A stretch of DNA of 64,000 bases from Amoebophrya sp. A120. Its lineage: Eukaryota > Protista > Dinoflagellata. Every line of letters starts with the position of its first letter. Positions within the stretch are counted from its first letter, which is position 1. The stretch lies in the NCBI GenBank assembly GCA_905178155.1, contig CAJINV010000003.1:6353985-6417984 (forward strand), in the 5' to 3' direction. The notes under the pieces were generated by a model. It worked only from the letters and a program-made list of their open reading frames with translations, did no database searches and was not told where the DNA came from. A program made the position numbers and the translations under genes. Positions 37,248-43,166 of this stretch are shown one piece after another.

Positions 37248-38660
37248 CTTTTACTGTCGTACGGGTACGGCGGTGCATAAGTAATCATATACTTAACCAA
37301 GCAACACCTGGCAATGAGTGGCGTAACTCGAAAACGATACGTTGTACATACAGATCCTTGGTTATCTGCAAAGAACAGAAAAATAAGCTGACTGAAAGTA
37401 AAAAGACCGCTTTTATGTGAGTCGCTCACTATGTTACGCTCAGGTACGAGCACACGACATGTAGGAAACTGCTGCAGGAGCAACCCATGCTTTCATTTGA
37501 CCAATCGCGATCGCGCGACCTTTCAAGGGTATGGAGATCTTCAGCTCGCGCGTCTCACTGTAGATCATGAGCTTGCGCGTGGTGTGACATATTACCCGAG
37601 ATCGCAGCGCACACATGGTCGATGAAGTGCGAAGTTAGCCGCTTTCTCGTGCTTACGCATTTCTTGGCAGCTATTTGTGTTATTCTTTCTTTTTAGTTGC
37701 TTCATTTCGTGTTTTGAAGTTTCTCTGGCTGCACAGCAACTTAGCATCGACGCGGGTGAAGCGGACACGACGTCACATCAAGTGCGCCAGTCCTCTTCCC
37801 CGATTTAAAAATGTTTTCAAAAAGTGTATGCCCTGTATCTATTAAATCTTGCACTTGTTGTTCGACGTATCTAGACAACTCAATATGCTGTGATTCCTAT
37901 ACCATGGTTTAACTTCAGGAGAACGACACAAACTACGTCACTCTCCTACCATTTCTCACGGTATTTTGTAAAAACAGAATACACATATTTAAATCCAGTA
38001 TCAACATCGGATTTAGTCTGATTCCTATAATAAACTGATTCTGATTCCTGCTGATTGTCTATTCCACTGATATTTCTGACTGTAACCATTATTACGTGTC
38101 TCTTTGGTCGTCCGACTTGTCTTTTCTTTTCCATTGACCGCAATAGTTTTTGGTTAGTTTTGCTTTGTCTGATGATGATTCTAAATCGATTCCCCGATTT
38201 TTGTGATGTGTTCTATAAAACCTGTTGGATAGTTGTGAATTGATTACATAGGTGTTTTGAACGAGCTGGAACTAACTATCGAGTCACGACAAATAAAACT
38301 GATCGAAGCAGCTGCTTTCAGTGTGATTTTCTCCGTGACTCTTCACAGCGAAAATCAAAGCCATGATCACACTGAAAAATCTCTAACTACGCAGCGATAC
38401 AAATGCTGATACAGCTTCGATACTGCCTTGTGACTTTTGTGTGTGAAACCTATACTCTTGACCTGTACAGAAAAACGTGCCTGCTTGAGCAATTCTCAAC
38501 GGTGTGGGGTCTTTTCGTCGAATTGCTGGCTACTCCGAATCGCTCCGATGAATTAAGTTCTTCTGCTGTGTACCGTCGGTCTGATACTAGCTTCGTATTG
38601 TACAAAATGCCTCACGACTTGGTCACACAGCTTGCTCCTGTTCTACTTATGTGCTTGGTC

Positions 38661-38913
38661 TATCAACTGTAAAAATGTCTGGGTCTGGGAAGAATTGATG
38701 TTTGTCGTGCTTGTCTGGCATGACTCTTGAATCTGTCATGCACGTTACCCAGGAGCTCTGTCTTTCTGTGATGCAGAAACGCAGTTTGTCATGCAGAATA
38801 GGCAACACCTAGAAGCTCAGAAACTTGTCATGCTGAGCCAGCATTTGCGGCCTCGTCATGAGACGCCACCCAGCATCACAAGTTTCCAGACCCAGACATT
38901 TTTACATTTGATA
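38661..38913. mobile_element. Introner family A copy in non-coding DNA (likely rhodopsin 3' UTR)
   Basis: TATCAACTGTAAAAATGTCTGGGTCTGG / CCAGACCCAGACATTTTTACATTTGATA; direct repeat TGGTC at 38656-38660 and 38914-38918. Confidence 0.9.
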
Positions 38914-38953
38914 TGGTCGGAAGTAGAACAAAAGATAATTCTTGATCCACGAT

Positions 38954-41850
38954 TTACTTGTCCATGCAGGCGGCGGAGTAGATGGCCATGCCGAAGGCAC
39001 CCTTGTTGACCAAGTCCGCGACGTTGTAGACGATGTTGATGTATGCGTTGCAAATATCTCTGGGTCTGGAAACCTGTGCTGCTGCGTCGAATAGTGGCTG
39101 GGTGCTCTGTCATTATACACAGCCAAGCATGAGAAATAACTGCACTGCTTTTGCATGACAAGAGGAGGGCTTTCTTCTTGGACACGCATCACAAGCTTTT
39201 TCTCTAGGTCTAGCCATGCCAGACAGGTGCATGACAAAATTTGCATCCTTCCAGGCCCAGATACTATCTTTGCAGTTGATATGATGACGGACTGGGAGTG
39301 GTAGCCGTAGTAGAAGGCGGTGTTACCGGGGGTGCCCGGCGCGATCAGGTAGGTCACGTAGTAGCCAATCGGGTAGATGGACCAGCCGACGGACACAATC
39401 AGGCGCAGGGTGTTGAAAGCGGACTTCATGGCCACGTTGGTTGACTTTGCGCTGATCTGAGACGCCTCGCCCATGAACACCTGTTTTGGATTTTTTTCAA
39501 ATAACACATCGAACGTCATTAGTTTGGAAAAAAAAATGCGGCTCTCGTGTTGGCACTGAGGTTAATGATACGCAGATTTCTTTTGCATGGCACCTCTTCA
39601 ATACGTCGGAAATAAGAATTTCACAGATGTAGTACCTCGTAGATGATGTAGAGCCAGCACAGCATGCCCGGGACGAAGCCGCAGAGGACGGAGATGATGC
39701 CGGCCTCACCGAACCAGCCGAAGAGCAGCATGCCGACGGACGTGCCCAACAACTTCCAGAACAAGCTGGCGCTGACATCCATGACCGCGGCCAAGATCAG
39801 GTAGAATTCGACGATCTGTATTGAAGAATCCGGATACCAATACAACGAACCAAGCCTTTTTTACTTCAGCTAAAGGAGAGTGAACAAAATTTTGATTTTC
39901 ACTTGATGTGCATTTCTGGTGCAGTACATTCCAGTCCTGTTTTTCTTTTTTTCTCCGGAATGAGACTGCATCGAAGAATAAAATAATTTCCCCAGAACCT
40001 GCAGAGGCACGGTGATCAACCAGTCCGTGTAGCGGTAGGCCGTGGGGGACTGCTGGGTCTTGGACCAGGTGTCCTTCATGTAGATGTAGTTCCAGAAAGC
40101 AACGCCGCACACCAGGGCCGCGACGCAGATGGATCGCTTCCACTCTGTTGTTTTTCAAAAAGTTTTTCCGATACTAGATTTAAATCCTGGGTTCTCGCGT
40201 ACCGAGACCTTTACATCAAACCTCTCTCTTCTGTTGGGGCGTCTCGAGCAGTAGCCAAACATTTTAATTACATCGTCGATTGCATAAGCATCTAGAATGC
40301 CGAAATGCTCTCCAGAATGCACAAAAGGCTTTATATTGAAAACTAAAATCCCAAAGGGAAGTTTGAAAATAAGCACTGTAGCATAGCGAACTGAACTTGA
40401 AAATAAGCAAGGCTTTATACGCTTTGGGACTTCGTACATCTCGACGAGGAAGAAGACGGTGAAGGCGAGCATCGCGTTGCACGCAATCCAGAAGGTGGTG
40501 CCGACGACATCGTGGCTGCCCAACGCCTCGTTGTCAGCCAAGGCCTGGACGATCGGAATGCCCGTGCTGGACAGCGGGAACCCGTAGGGCAGGTATGCGC
40601 GCGAAACAGAAGAGCTGCACTCAAATAATGCAATAAAAATTCTGGTGCGCAATGCAACGCAATAACTATCCACAAAAAGCGTTCGTGATTTGTGGCGCGA
40701 GCCTCACGTAGAGTCGAGCGCGTTTTGCAGCAATACTGATTTCTTCTGCTTAGAAACACAATAAGCCTACCTGGCAGCTTATAAAACACGCAACAGCATA
40801 CAACGTTTTTGCACTTTCGAATTTTTGCGCCGATGATGCAAAATTTTGATTCTCGCCTGCTTCGATCGCGTGGATACGTTGTAGGACAGGGGCTGTCCCG
40901 GGTACTTGTACGGGTAACCCTGGTCGATGAAGTGCGAGTCGTGCAACACCTGACAGTTGTGGCGGCGCGCCGATCATTATTCTTCTATCCTACACACGTG
41001 AAGCCTTTTTTCTCTTAAATTTAGTGCGACAAAAATCCAAACATACGTGATACTAAAATCATCAGTGAGCTCCGTAGTAGTACCTGAGCGGCGACCGGGG
41101 TCTCAAGGGCGCCGACGAGCTCCGATTTGGACACGCCCTCTTCCTGCAGGGCCTTGGTCATGCCCTGCTCGACGGCCTTCACCTGCTCGCTGTTCAAGCC
41201 TCCCTTGGCTGCGGAAAATATGGATTCTAAAACAGTGCTCGTGCGAAATCAAAAGCCTTGTATTGTGCAATGCTGAAGGTGGGAGCACGCGGAAACATAC
41301 GAAAATTTTTTCCGTGTCGTAGCTGCACAATCAGCTTGATCTTTAAATGCGGGCCTCTTTGCATGTCTTGGTCTCTACTTACTCGCTCGAGGAATTTACT
41401 AAATTTCCTTCGCACAAACATTGTCCTTTCAACACGGAACAGTTTTTTTTTTTAGTTTGGTAGCAATCACCTGGGACTCTGACAATCCCGAGTCCTTGAA
41501 CTCCTTCAGGAGGGTTGGCCCGGCCTCCTTTGCAAGTGTTTCCCGCGTAATCGTGTGCTCCAATTCCTGAAGTGTATATTGTGACGCAGAGTGCGGGGTA
41601 AAAAAAAACATGAGCATCAACAGCCAGAGAAAAAAGCGATCGTCAACTGGTTCTTGACCTTAGAATGTTTTAAATCAGCGAAGTGCACCACACGGCCATG
41701 AAAATAGTTCGGTGCGCATGCTCACATTTTCCCAAACCTGCATCTTACCGATCCGATGACTGGAAGTGCCTTTTCGACATAGGCATTGGTGATGTCCGAC
41801 TTGTCCGCCTGGACAGCCGCCGCGAGGGCGATCAAGCTCTTCAATCCCAT
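38954..41850 (-). CDS. Proteorhodopsin-type microbial rhodopsin (DTE, Q105) with signal peptide and long N-terminal extension, 8 exons, ~400 aa
   Basis: Exons approx. 41850-41749, 41566-~41461, 41208-41084, 40949-~40878, ~40592-40421, 40144-39999, 39815-39636, 39480-39283 plus terminal 39049-38954 (nine coding segments if the last introner is counted). Motifs GTTFWIACNAMLAFTVFF, RYTDWLITVPLQIVEF, GWSIYPIGY and retinal Lys in NVADLVNKGAFG. The 7-TM core is secure; linkage of the 5' exons is inferred. Confidence 0.9.
39050..39282. mobile_element. Degenerate family A introner forming the last rhodopsin intron
   Basis: CTGGGTCTGGAA / TTCCAGGCCCAG inverted cores; no GT-AG. Removal gives QSVI-NAYINIVYNVAD. 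Confidence 0.8.
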
Positions 41851-43166
41851 GCTTTTGATTTCTATAACACAATCACTTTTTTTCCTATTCTCTCCTTTCT
41901 TTCTCTCGGAGGTACACTGCTCCGTTCCTAAGTTTTCGTTTTCAAGAGAGAAATATCGACCCTGTGTGCGTTGCGGGACCTCTCAGACCTAAACACAAAC
42001 TCTACGGGGGACTAAGTTCACTCTCACCTCCGGGGCGACTAAATTAAACTTGCGCTTCGCTTCTGTTCCTTACGAACAGACACGCACGGGCCCTGTATTT
42101 GTGTGAAATATCACCAGAGACGTGACATCGCAGACCTAAAAAATAACGGTGGGGTTCGAAGAGTACAGATTGATCGAATCTTACTTACAGCTCTTTACTT
42201 TCAACCGACAGGTTTCACAATCAATACTGAAGTCAGCTCGCCGCCCAAAAAGTCTAGGAGAAAGCAACACACGCTGTAAAGCTCCGAATTTATTCCGCGT
42301 TCTCGCATCATCGTCATCATCTATCCTGCGCGGGGTATTGCGCAGAGGGCGGAAAAGACATTTCAAAAAAAAACACATGAAAAAAAGAACCGATTCAACG
42401 TTGATGTGTACACACATGCCTGCATAAAACCGACTCTGGCGCATCACCAGTGTGAAGCGTCACCGCTTCGCAGTCTGTGATCAAAAACCGAGATAAAAAA
42501 CGCGCGTGGGTCACCGAAATTTAAACACCTCAAACACAAATTTAGCTGCGGCCGTCATTGCCACATGCGAATGTGGTGGGTAGCGCGTCATGGTCATGAG
42601 CCAGGCCTGTGAGTCTTTATCTGCGAAATAAGATTTTCTGTAGCTGCGAAACAGGATTGTTCATCGCAAAAAAAAACACTCTATCTCAGAGTTGCACCAA
42701 AGACCCTTGATGCTAGATTCGTTCTTGGGTCGGCGCTGCTTTTCGTGCGCACGAGAAGCGAGGAGGGTCCTGTTCATCAGTTATCCTCGCAAAAATTTTC
42801 ATCCGCCCTTGCATACATAAAGCCGGCAGGTGTGCTCGCTTCTAAAACGCGTACACATGCAACCAATTGTGTGCTCGCTTCTTCAGGCGAGCGAGTTACT
42901 TACTGTCAAACTCACTATCTATATTCCTGCTTGTAGGTAGCTAGCAACCAGTGTCTCAACCGGATGTCACCAAGATCGTACACATAAAACCAATACGCAT
43001 TGCAAAAGAATCGTACTCGTAGTAATTGCATACCCTAACTGGCTCACGATTCTCCTCAACATCTGACTCCTGTCTGAGTTACCAGTCAAGGGTTACTCTG
43101 TCCAGACCTACCCCAAACCCCGCGCTCTTCGCTACAATCCGCACTCTCCTCCACAATCCTCCAGGT

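Follow-up and report, generated by a model that had tools for sequence, protein, structure and literature searches.

A multi-exon proteorhodopsin gene with a long N-terminal extension in the plastid-less parasite Amoebophrya sp. A120

The locus and its transcript

The window considered here is a stretch of 64,000 nucleotides (nt) from the genome of the dinoflagellate Amoebophrya sp. A120 (contig CAJINV010000003.1, positions 6,353,985 to 6,417,984), whose minus strand carries, from position 41850 to position 38954 of the window, a gene for a proteorhodopsin that is preceded by an N-terminal extension of 160 residues. When the minus strand is read from 42000 to 38800, short coding blocks alternate with AT-richer spacers, and RNA contigs delimit nine coding exons (41850-41749, 41566-41463, 41213-41084, 40949-40878, 40589-40421, 40144-39999, 39815-39636, 39480-39282 and 39036-38954) that amount to 1185 nt, i.e. 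394 codons and a stop. A first-pass annotation, made from the DNA letters alone, had put the ATG at 41850 and the TAA at 38956-38954 of the minus strand, which is where they lie, and the protein that it had spliced together is right, although the borders of four introns escape the GT-AG rules. The reading frame is unbroken across every exon junction, and each exon, translated separately in its own phase, is a consecutive block of a 394-residue database protein (P0114, "unnamed protein product, Amoebophrya sp. A120"). This protein surfaced in a search with the N-terminal region of a relative, and the whole-protein analyses were run on it. The gene is thus not "hidden," as had been supposed; its exact 394-residue model is already present in NCBI, nr and EukProt.

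Assembled RNA contigs in two sets (X1 and X2), together with two raw RNA-seq runs from the same organism, were aligned to positions 38400-42600 (4201 letters). The contig sets had been labelled RNA by guess, and it is their intron-free joints that show an RNA origin. A contig of 1159 nt from X1, with a uniform depth of ∼830, runs from 41907 to 39282 and joins exons 1-8 with all introns removed, and a contig of 1980 nt from X2 runs from 40589 (exon 5) to 38914 and, after one further intron, from 38655 to beyond 38400. All exons are therefore joined as one transcript covering 41850-38954, as the first-pass annotation had proposed, and the outcome that it had named as counting against its reading, a separate transcript for exons 41850-40878, is contradicted by the X1 contig. 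Raw reads of one run (X21) span the junctions 39634/39478 (104 reads), 39282/39036 (100) and 38914/38655 (122), the last of which lies in the 3' untranslated region (3'UTR) and has a count similar to those of the two coding junctions upstream of it. Read coverage from this run is restricted to the 3' part of the gene, and 55 of its reads stop at 39701 and continue into what we take to be the SMART template-switch oligo in reverse complement; because these read ends are accordingly taken as a technical artefact, so is the 3'-only coverage. A complete MMETSP transcript obtained independently from a different strain of Amoebophrya (P0113, 396 residues) has the same architecture, as does a protein annotated in the A25 genome (P0118, 398 residues), and these two proteins together with P0114 are the three long orthologs compared below.

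At its 5' end, the message reaches back to 41929, the farthest position in the RNA contigs, with no ATG between 41929 and 41850, such that exon 1 (41749-41929, minus strand, as for all features of the gene) holds the 5' untranslated region and codons 1-34. At its 3' end, exon 9 (38914-39036) encodes residues 368/369-394 and holds the TAA and the start of the 3'UTR, which continues into exon 10 (38400-38655); the RNA contigs run at least 700-800 nt further past 38400. In total, the message extends at least 1.1 kb beyond the stop codon, without a long open reading frame (positions 37250-38655), toward a co-oriented dsRBD gene (open reading frame 37247-36180, minus strand). This RNA is either a long 3'UTR or else read-through or polycistronic RNA. 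Since RNA passes the TAA, reassignment of the stop codon was also considered, and it was rejected; the three orthologs all end in ...MDK, and nothing coding-like lies downstream.

The gene is eukaryotic and intron-containing, as the first-pass annotation held, with nine introns and a place on an 11.99-Mb contig. Five introns have GT..AG borders, and introns 2, 4, 8 and 9 are non-canonical. The introner elements of Amoebophrya have been described as having non-canonical borders, direct repeats of 3-5 nt, terminal inverted repeats and many copies (Farhat 2021, PMC7789003), and introns 8 and 9 fit this description. Both begin with TATCAA and carry terminal inverted repeats, of 40 nt in the case of intron 9, and both are bordered by 5-nt direct repeats, which read CATCA for intron 8 (39037-39281; 245 nt) and GACCA for intron 9 (38656-38913; 258 nt), the one located in the 3'UTR. 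Intron 9 has at least 40 near-full-length copies on many contigs, nearly all of them 94-96% identical (40 scored of 2607 candidates). In other words, intron 9 belongs to a young, high-copy family, of which intron 8, within the coding region, is a much diverged member. Intron 2 (41214-41462; 249 nt, TA..TC borders) is single copy in the genome and intron 4 (40590-40877; 288 nt, GT..TG borders) essentially so, and a repeat scan found terminal inverted repeats in neither; these two are therefore non-canonical introns and not introners.

The rhodopsin core and its relatives

The C-terminal 234 residues are a proteorhodopsin. Pfam Bac_rhodopsin (PF01036) matches residues 166-388 of the whole protein with an E-value of 1.5e-37 and also gives four matches on separate exons, none of which chance could plausibly explain, and the top match among solved structures is the Med12 blue proteorhodopsin (4jq6, E 1.2e-70), followed by the HOT75 blue and green proteorhodopsins (∼1e-60). 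Matches to xanthorhodopsin (3ddl, 1.5e-15) and bacteriorhodopsin (∼1e-7) are far weaker. In an AlphaFold2 (AF2) model, the predicted local distance difference test (pLDDT) score of the core is ∼90, and Foldseek superposes this core on proteorhodopsin structures with TM-scores of 0.88-0.94. The extension, for which the first-pass annotation had suggested such structural checks, yields no confident fold.

The functional residues are spread over the last exons of the coding region. Exon 5 (40421-40589; residues 137-192/193) encodes the NPYGFPLSSTGIPIVQ motif and helix A, and exon 6 (39999-40144; residues 193/194-241) encodes helices B and C with N211 (40091-40089), R230, D233 (40025-40023), T237 and Q241. 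Exon 7 (39636-39815; residues 242-301) covers helices C to E and includes the proton donor E244 (39809-39807). Exon 8 (39282-39480; residues 302-367/368) encodes helix F and the F-G loop, into which 9 residues specific to the lineage are inserted, and exon 9 supplies D375 and the retinal lysine K379 (39004-39002). R230, D233, T237, Q241, E244, D375 and K379 align, with identical spacing, to R94, D97, T101, Q105, E108, D227 and K231 of proteorhodopsin; across 46 relatives, six of the seven do not vary and Q241 hardly does. By these residues the protein classes as a proton-pump-type rhodopsin of the proteorhodopsin clade, the type to which the first-pass annotation had assigned it, and Q241, a glutamine at the spectral-tuning position L/Q105, indicates that it should be of the blue-absorbing subtype. 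The insertion in the F-G loop, rich in Pro, Gly and Tyr (residues 349-359, ∼39339-39307), is confined to the three long Amoebophrya proteins and, if placed by homology with proteorhodopsins, would share the outer face with the N-terminal tail.

A quick maximum-likelihood tree of 46 proteins and 250 columns, from which the tails were excluded by a fill filter and which is unrooted apart from a chosen outgroup, places the protein in a eukaryote-type clade (support 99) nested among bacterial proteorhodopsins; this is the phylogeny that the first-pass annotation had called for, and it agrees with the assignment made there. The three long Amoebophrya proteins group together (99), with forms of ∼306 residues that share the Tyr/Pro-rich segment as their sister group (91), and a second Amoebophrya lineage (P0067 and P0082; 311 residues, with a different 85-residue tail) lies elsewhere in the eukaryote-type clade. 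The simplest reading is that a tail of ∼80 residues is common in the clade, that the juxtamembrane motif is old and that the signal peptide and residues 16-∼100 were added in the Amoebophrya lineage. Because of the limited rooting, loss of these parts in the sister group, rather than their gain in Amoebophrya, is possible.

The genome holds at least five further proteorhodopsin-clade loci, all of them split by introns: C3:1400852, C8:4176145-4176804, C8:4249862, C13:2466166 and C4:6136178 (L001-L007; C3 is the contig of the gene described here). The A120 protein P0067 matches none of the five exactly, and the family therefore has at least seven members. The paralog at 4.25 Mb of C8 likewise carries the NPYGFPLSSTG motif.

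A source of retinal is found in the same genome. Domains for CrtI, CrtB (SQS_PSY), two lycopene-cyclase CarR domains and Blh are co-linear on the minus strand at C3:1647821-1656976 (L017, L018, L019-L023), 4.7 Mb from the window on the same contig, and RPE65-type genes are present as well. The domain order of this locus is that of the four-enzyme retinal protein of Thecamonas (Rius 2023), a report in which Amoebophrya is not mentioned. Judged from this gene content, the parasite's own CrtI-CrtB-CrtY-Blh locus can make retinal.

The N-terminal extension

The N-terminal 160 residues fall into three parts, namely a signal-peptide-like start (residues 1-15; 41850-41806), an acidic helical region (16-112) and a Tyr/Pro-rich juxtamembrane segment (113-160). 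Together with the seven-helix rhodopsin and its Asp, Thr, Glu and retinal Lys, these are the elements that the first-pass annotation had listed, and all of them are present. Residues 1-160 gave no match in Pfam (searched per exon and with the whole protein, without a hit before residue 166), NCBIfam or the PDB, and residues 16-136 gave no usable match in the ESM Atlas.

Residues 1-15 are only 33-40% identical among the three orthologs, and yet, upon inspection by hand, a pattern resembling a signal peptide recurs in each of them: one Lys (K4 in P0114), a hydrophobic core of 10-11 residues with a Kyte-Doolittle 9-mer value of 2.5-3.1 and small residues at -3/-1 (V-x-A or A-x-A) ahead of Asp-Lys. 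In relatives with tails of 75-85 residues, such a hydrophobic core is missing (Kyte-Doolittle 0.3-1.7). That these residues form a mitochondrial presequence or an eighth transmembrane helix was considered and rejected, given the single Lys, the acidic residues that follow directly and a hydrophobic run of just 10-11 residues.

The acidic region, encoded by the end of exon 1, by exon 2 (41463-41566; residues 35-69) and by exon 3 (41084-41213; residues 69/70-112, with GLSxxQV-type motifs), has a net charge of -6 and is modelled by AF2 as helices at low confidence. Its identity between strains is 57-75%, as compared with 92-96% for residues 113-160 and 88-92% for the core; protein similarity between the two Amoebophrya genomes, A120 and A25, is reported to be low (Farhat 2021, PMC7789003), and against that background these values speak for constraint on the tail. 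Nevertheless, the region can be aligned across the three divergent strains with merely 2-4 gapped columns. A word-index search of 5.8 billion proteins with residues 16-125 matched only the three Amoebophrya orthologs, and on this evidence the acidic stretch 16-112 appears restricted to Amoebophrya. An exhaustive phmmer search of 1.84 billion representatives with the 43 residues of exon 3 returned two matches, a surface protein of Gram-positive type whose repeats are of the atypical Rib kind and a HEAT-repeat protein (P0119 and P0120), which were rejected as homologs because the score sums 4-5 repeats of a short L-T/S-x-E-Q-x-x-A-V helix motif; we take the shared motif as convergence, not homology. 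An internal duplication of 34 residues within the tail is suggestive only, as the observed score was reached by 9 of 500 and 6 of 500 shuffles for two of the orthologs and by 76 of 500 for the third. The acidic helices could serve as a spacer, as a docking surface or as a sorting or pro-region.

The juxtamembrane segment, the first half of which is encoded by exon 4 (40878-40949; residues 113-136), ends in NPYGFPLSSTGIPIVQ directly before helix A. It is common to environmental proteins of 304-311 residues and is found in part in proteins of 256-259 residues and in a paralog on contig C8. Such conservation points to very strong constraint, and it suggests that the segment plays a structural role on the outer side of the pump.

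Proposed function and relation to known rhodopsins

Where would such a tail lie, and what would the protein do? We lean toward the reading that it binds retinal and, as a member of the proteorhodopsin clade, uses blue light to pump protons, its long N-terminal tail reaching the luminal or extracellular side by means of a signal peptide. By homology, the N-terminus of a proteorhodopsin is on the outer (periplasmic) side, which in a eukaryote would correspond to the lumen of the endoplasmic reticulum (ER) and then to the extracellular or luminal face. A tail of ∼145 residues would thus have to cross the ER membrane, and residues 1-15 would be the cleavable signal peptide enabling this transfer. 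Wallin and von Heijne reportedly noted in 1995 that, among multi-spanning proteins such as G-protein-coupled receptors, short N-terminal tails are translocated without a signal peptide whereas long ones usually have one. The occurrence of a signal-peptide-like start only on the form with 160 N-terminal residues fits this picture, because the first helix can by itself bring a short N-terminal tail across, whereas long N-terminal tails generally need a signal peptide. In the mature protein, the tail would sit on the luminal or extracellular face, i.e. the proton-release side, and given the full set of donor and acceptor residues, the protein should pump protons toward it. The structure of the gene, its single mRNA, the family to which the protein belongs, its catalytic residues and the taxonomic restriction and conservation of the tail are observed; pumping, cleavage of the signal peptide, the side of the tail, the membrane that holds the protein and any role of the tail, e.g. 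in oligomer contacts, docking or sorting, are what we infer.

Several observations weigh against this proposal. A His75 that is hydrogen-bonded to the acceptor Asp is a hallmark of the proteorhodopsin/xanthorhodopsin group, and in P0114 this position is Asn (N211); Asn is found in 18 of 18 eukaryote-type rows of our alignment (A1), and His in 4jq6 and three bacterial-type rows (P0004, P0001 and P0029). The replacement may change, and perhaps lower, the pKa of the acceptor, which would be relevant if the pump faces an acidic compartment. The hydrophobic core of residues 1-15 is short, and the tail is devoid of Cys and of N-glycosylation sites, which is unusual in an extracellular domain. Residues 16-112 also evolve much faster than the core, as would equally befit a spacer or a removable pro-region, and the AF2 pLDDT of 36-60 over residues 1-160 gives no confident fold, such that a fold search is uninformative on the tail.

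Some of these observations could be accommodated if the extension were mainly a targeting or pro-sequence, consisting of a signal peptide and a removable sorting region that directs the pump to some specific secretory or endomembrane compartment of the parasite, with a mature pump of ordinary size that perhaps keeps the Tyr/Pro-rich segment. Bipartite leaders are common in myzozoans, and residues 16-112 combine faster divergence than the core (57% versus 88% identity) with a lack of homologs outside the genus, low pLDDT and the absence of Cys and glycosylation sites. The N-terminal extensions known for eukaryotic pump rhodopsins are, moreover, targeting peptides, e.g. that of 30 residues in diatom FcR1 (PMC10627834). 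On the other hand, this region is acidic and helical, unlike transit peptides; its ∼100 residues remain alignable over three divergent strains; and the organism has no plastid to target. Paralogs and sister forms that lack a signal peptide also bear tails of 75-85 residues, which suggests that, in this clade, the mature protein retains a tail as such. We regard a mainly targeting role as doubtful. A light sensor, serving for example in the orientation or timing of dinospores and using the N-terminal tail and enlarged F-G loop as a signalling or partner surface, we judge unlikely. The location of both the tail and the 9-residue insert on the outer face by homology would suit such a surface, the six or more proteorhodopsin-clade loci in the genome leave room for subfunctionalisation, and the His75 partner is lost; however, all three residues of the pump triad, the carboxylate donor E244 among them, are invariant. 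Sensory rhodopsins usually lack a proton donor. In addition, Pfam found no fused transducer-like domain in the whole protein, and the partners of known sensory rhodopsins bind on the membrane or cytoplasmic side, not on the outer face. The first-pass annotation had left the choice between a pump and a light sensor to be made; the pump type is supported, and the sensor is less likely because the carboxylate donor is kept.

A further explanation would discount the fusion itself as an artefact of annotation or assembly, with the upstream exons 41850-40878 forming a separate transcript or the locus being bacterial contamination. Assembled contigs can merge neighboring genes, and X1 and X2 were called RNA by guess. 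Against this, one contig of even depth spans exons 1-8 with the introns removed, the frame is continuous over all junctions, the architecture recurs in two other sources, an independent transcriptome and the A25 annotation, and spliceosomal introns and introners interrupt the rhodopsin part on a contig of 11.99 Mb; we consider such an artefact highly improbable.

A broader proposal can be made, which we put forward tentatively as one possibility. The Amoebophrya-specific additions, namely the signal peptide, the acidic helical tail and the enlarged loop on the outer side, would act together as a functional luminal or extracellular module, by which a pump of bacterial type is adapted to a membrane peculiar to the parasite, e.g. 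that of the dinospore surface, of a vacuole or facing the host. With a four-enzyme retinal gene of its own, the plastid-less parasite would then be a self-sufficient photoheterotroph in its non-feeding, free-swimming stage. The lineage is indeed plastid-less, as the first-pass annotation had assumed (Farhat 2021, PMC7789003). A proteorhodopsin in this lineage is not new, contrary to what had been implied there: a large proton-pump cluster has been partly assigned to Syndiniales (Carradec 2018, PMC5785536), and a blue-tuned Amoebophrya proteorhodopsin is named in a reference database (Coesel 2021, PMC8017926). A full-text search of the Amoebophrya genome paper (Farhat 2021, PMC7789003) found no mention of rhodopsin, carotenoid or retinal, the extension is not described in the literature that we found naming both Amoebophrya and rhodopsin, and a literature search on N-terminal extensions of proton-pumping rhodopsins returned short targeting peptides only. 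Thus, whereas the gene model was already in databases and proteorhodopsins of the lineage in the literature, what we did not find described is the N-terminal extension, which appears restricted to the genus and is led by a putative signal peptide.

Syndiniales are among the most abundant parasites of the ocean, and a link between photoheterotrophy and parasitism has been flagged as possible and unexplored (Carradec 2018, PMC5785536). With this locus, a full-length and expressed pump gene is at hand in a strain that can be cultured and whose genome also holds a retinal pathway and several paralogs; what distinguishes the gene from bacterial pumps and from the shorter sister forms is its long, probably outward-facing tail led by a putative signal peptide. 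It bears on whether free dinospores use light to prolong their survival or infectivity and, more generally, on how a bacterial membrane protein is refitted for the eukaryotic secretory pathway.

Comparison with known systems places the protein more precisely. The bacterial blue proteorhodopsins of Med12 (4jq6) and HOT75 (4kly) have the same seven-helix core (P0114 is ∼55-60% identical to 4jq6, as read off the alignment), the same Arg, Asp, Thr, Gln and Glu and the same Asp and Lys at the same spacing, including the tuning Gln, and a fold that the predicted one matches with a TM-score of ∼0.9. They have a short leader of ∼20 residues in place of the 160-residue N-terminal part, and the Amoebophrya protein differs from them further in its eukaryotic nuclear gene with nine introns, its replacement of His75 by Asn and its 9-residue F-G insert. 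In channelrhodopsins, as seen in the C1C2 structure, an extracellular N-domain lies between a signal peptide and helix 1, and its cysteines take part in dimerisation. The likeness is one of analogy, i.e. a eukaryotic microbial rhodopsin with a signal peptide and an extra N-terminal domain; channelrhodopsins differ in clade and in their channel function, the Amoebophrya tail has no Cys, and there is no sequence similarity.

Closer relatives are the environmental proteorhodopsins of 304-311 residues (P0107, P0007, P0006 and P0108-P0112), which form the sister clade (91), are 65-69% identical in the core over the full alignment and share the Asn at the His75 position, the Gln and a segment of ∼45 residues, HFIDxGyPYxY...NPYGFPLSSTGIPIVQ, before helix A. 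They lack the hydrophobic, signal-peptide-like start and equivalents of residues 16-∼100, their tails being of 75-85 residues, and are probably the alveolate/Syndiniales "cluster 2" of Tara Oceans (Carradec 2018, PMC5785536). The pump rhodopsins of Oxyrrhis, Prorocentrum and other dinoflagellates (Slamovits 2011; reviewed in PMC11453091) are likewise pumps of bacterial origin in the dinoflagellate lineage, for which a role in supplementary light energy has been proposed and plasma, endosomal and vacuolar membranes have been reported as locations (PMC11453091). In the Tara analysis, the main pumps of dinoflagellates, stramenopiles and haptophytes fall in a xanthorhodopsin-like cluster (Carradec 2018, PMC5785536), whereas the Amoebophrya protein is far nearer to true proteorhodopsins (1e-70, versus 1.5e-15 for 3ddl). 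Finally, the diatom xanthorhodopsin FcR1 (Strauss 2023, PMC10627834) is likewise a eukaryotic pump with an N-terminal extension containing a putative cleaved signal peptide. In FcR1 this extension has 30 residues and serves plastid targeting; in Amoebophrya it has ∼160, the host is plastid-less, and the membrane-proximal third of the extension is more conserved than the pump itself.

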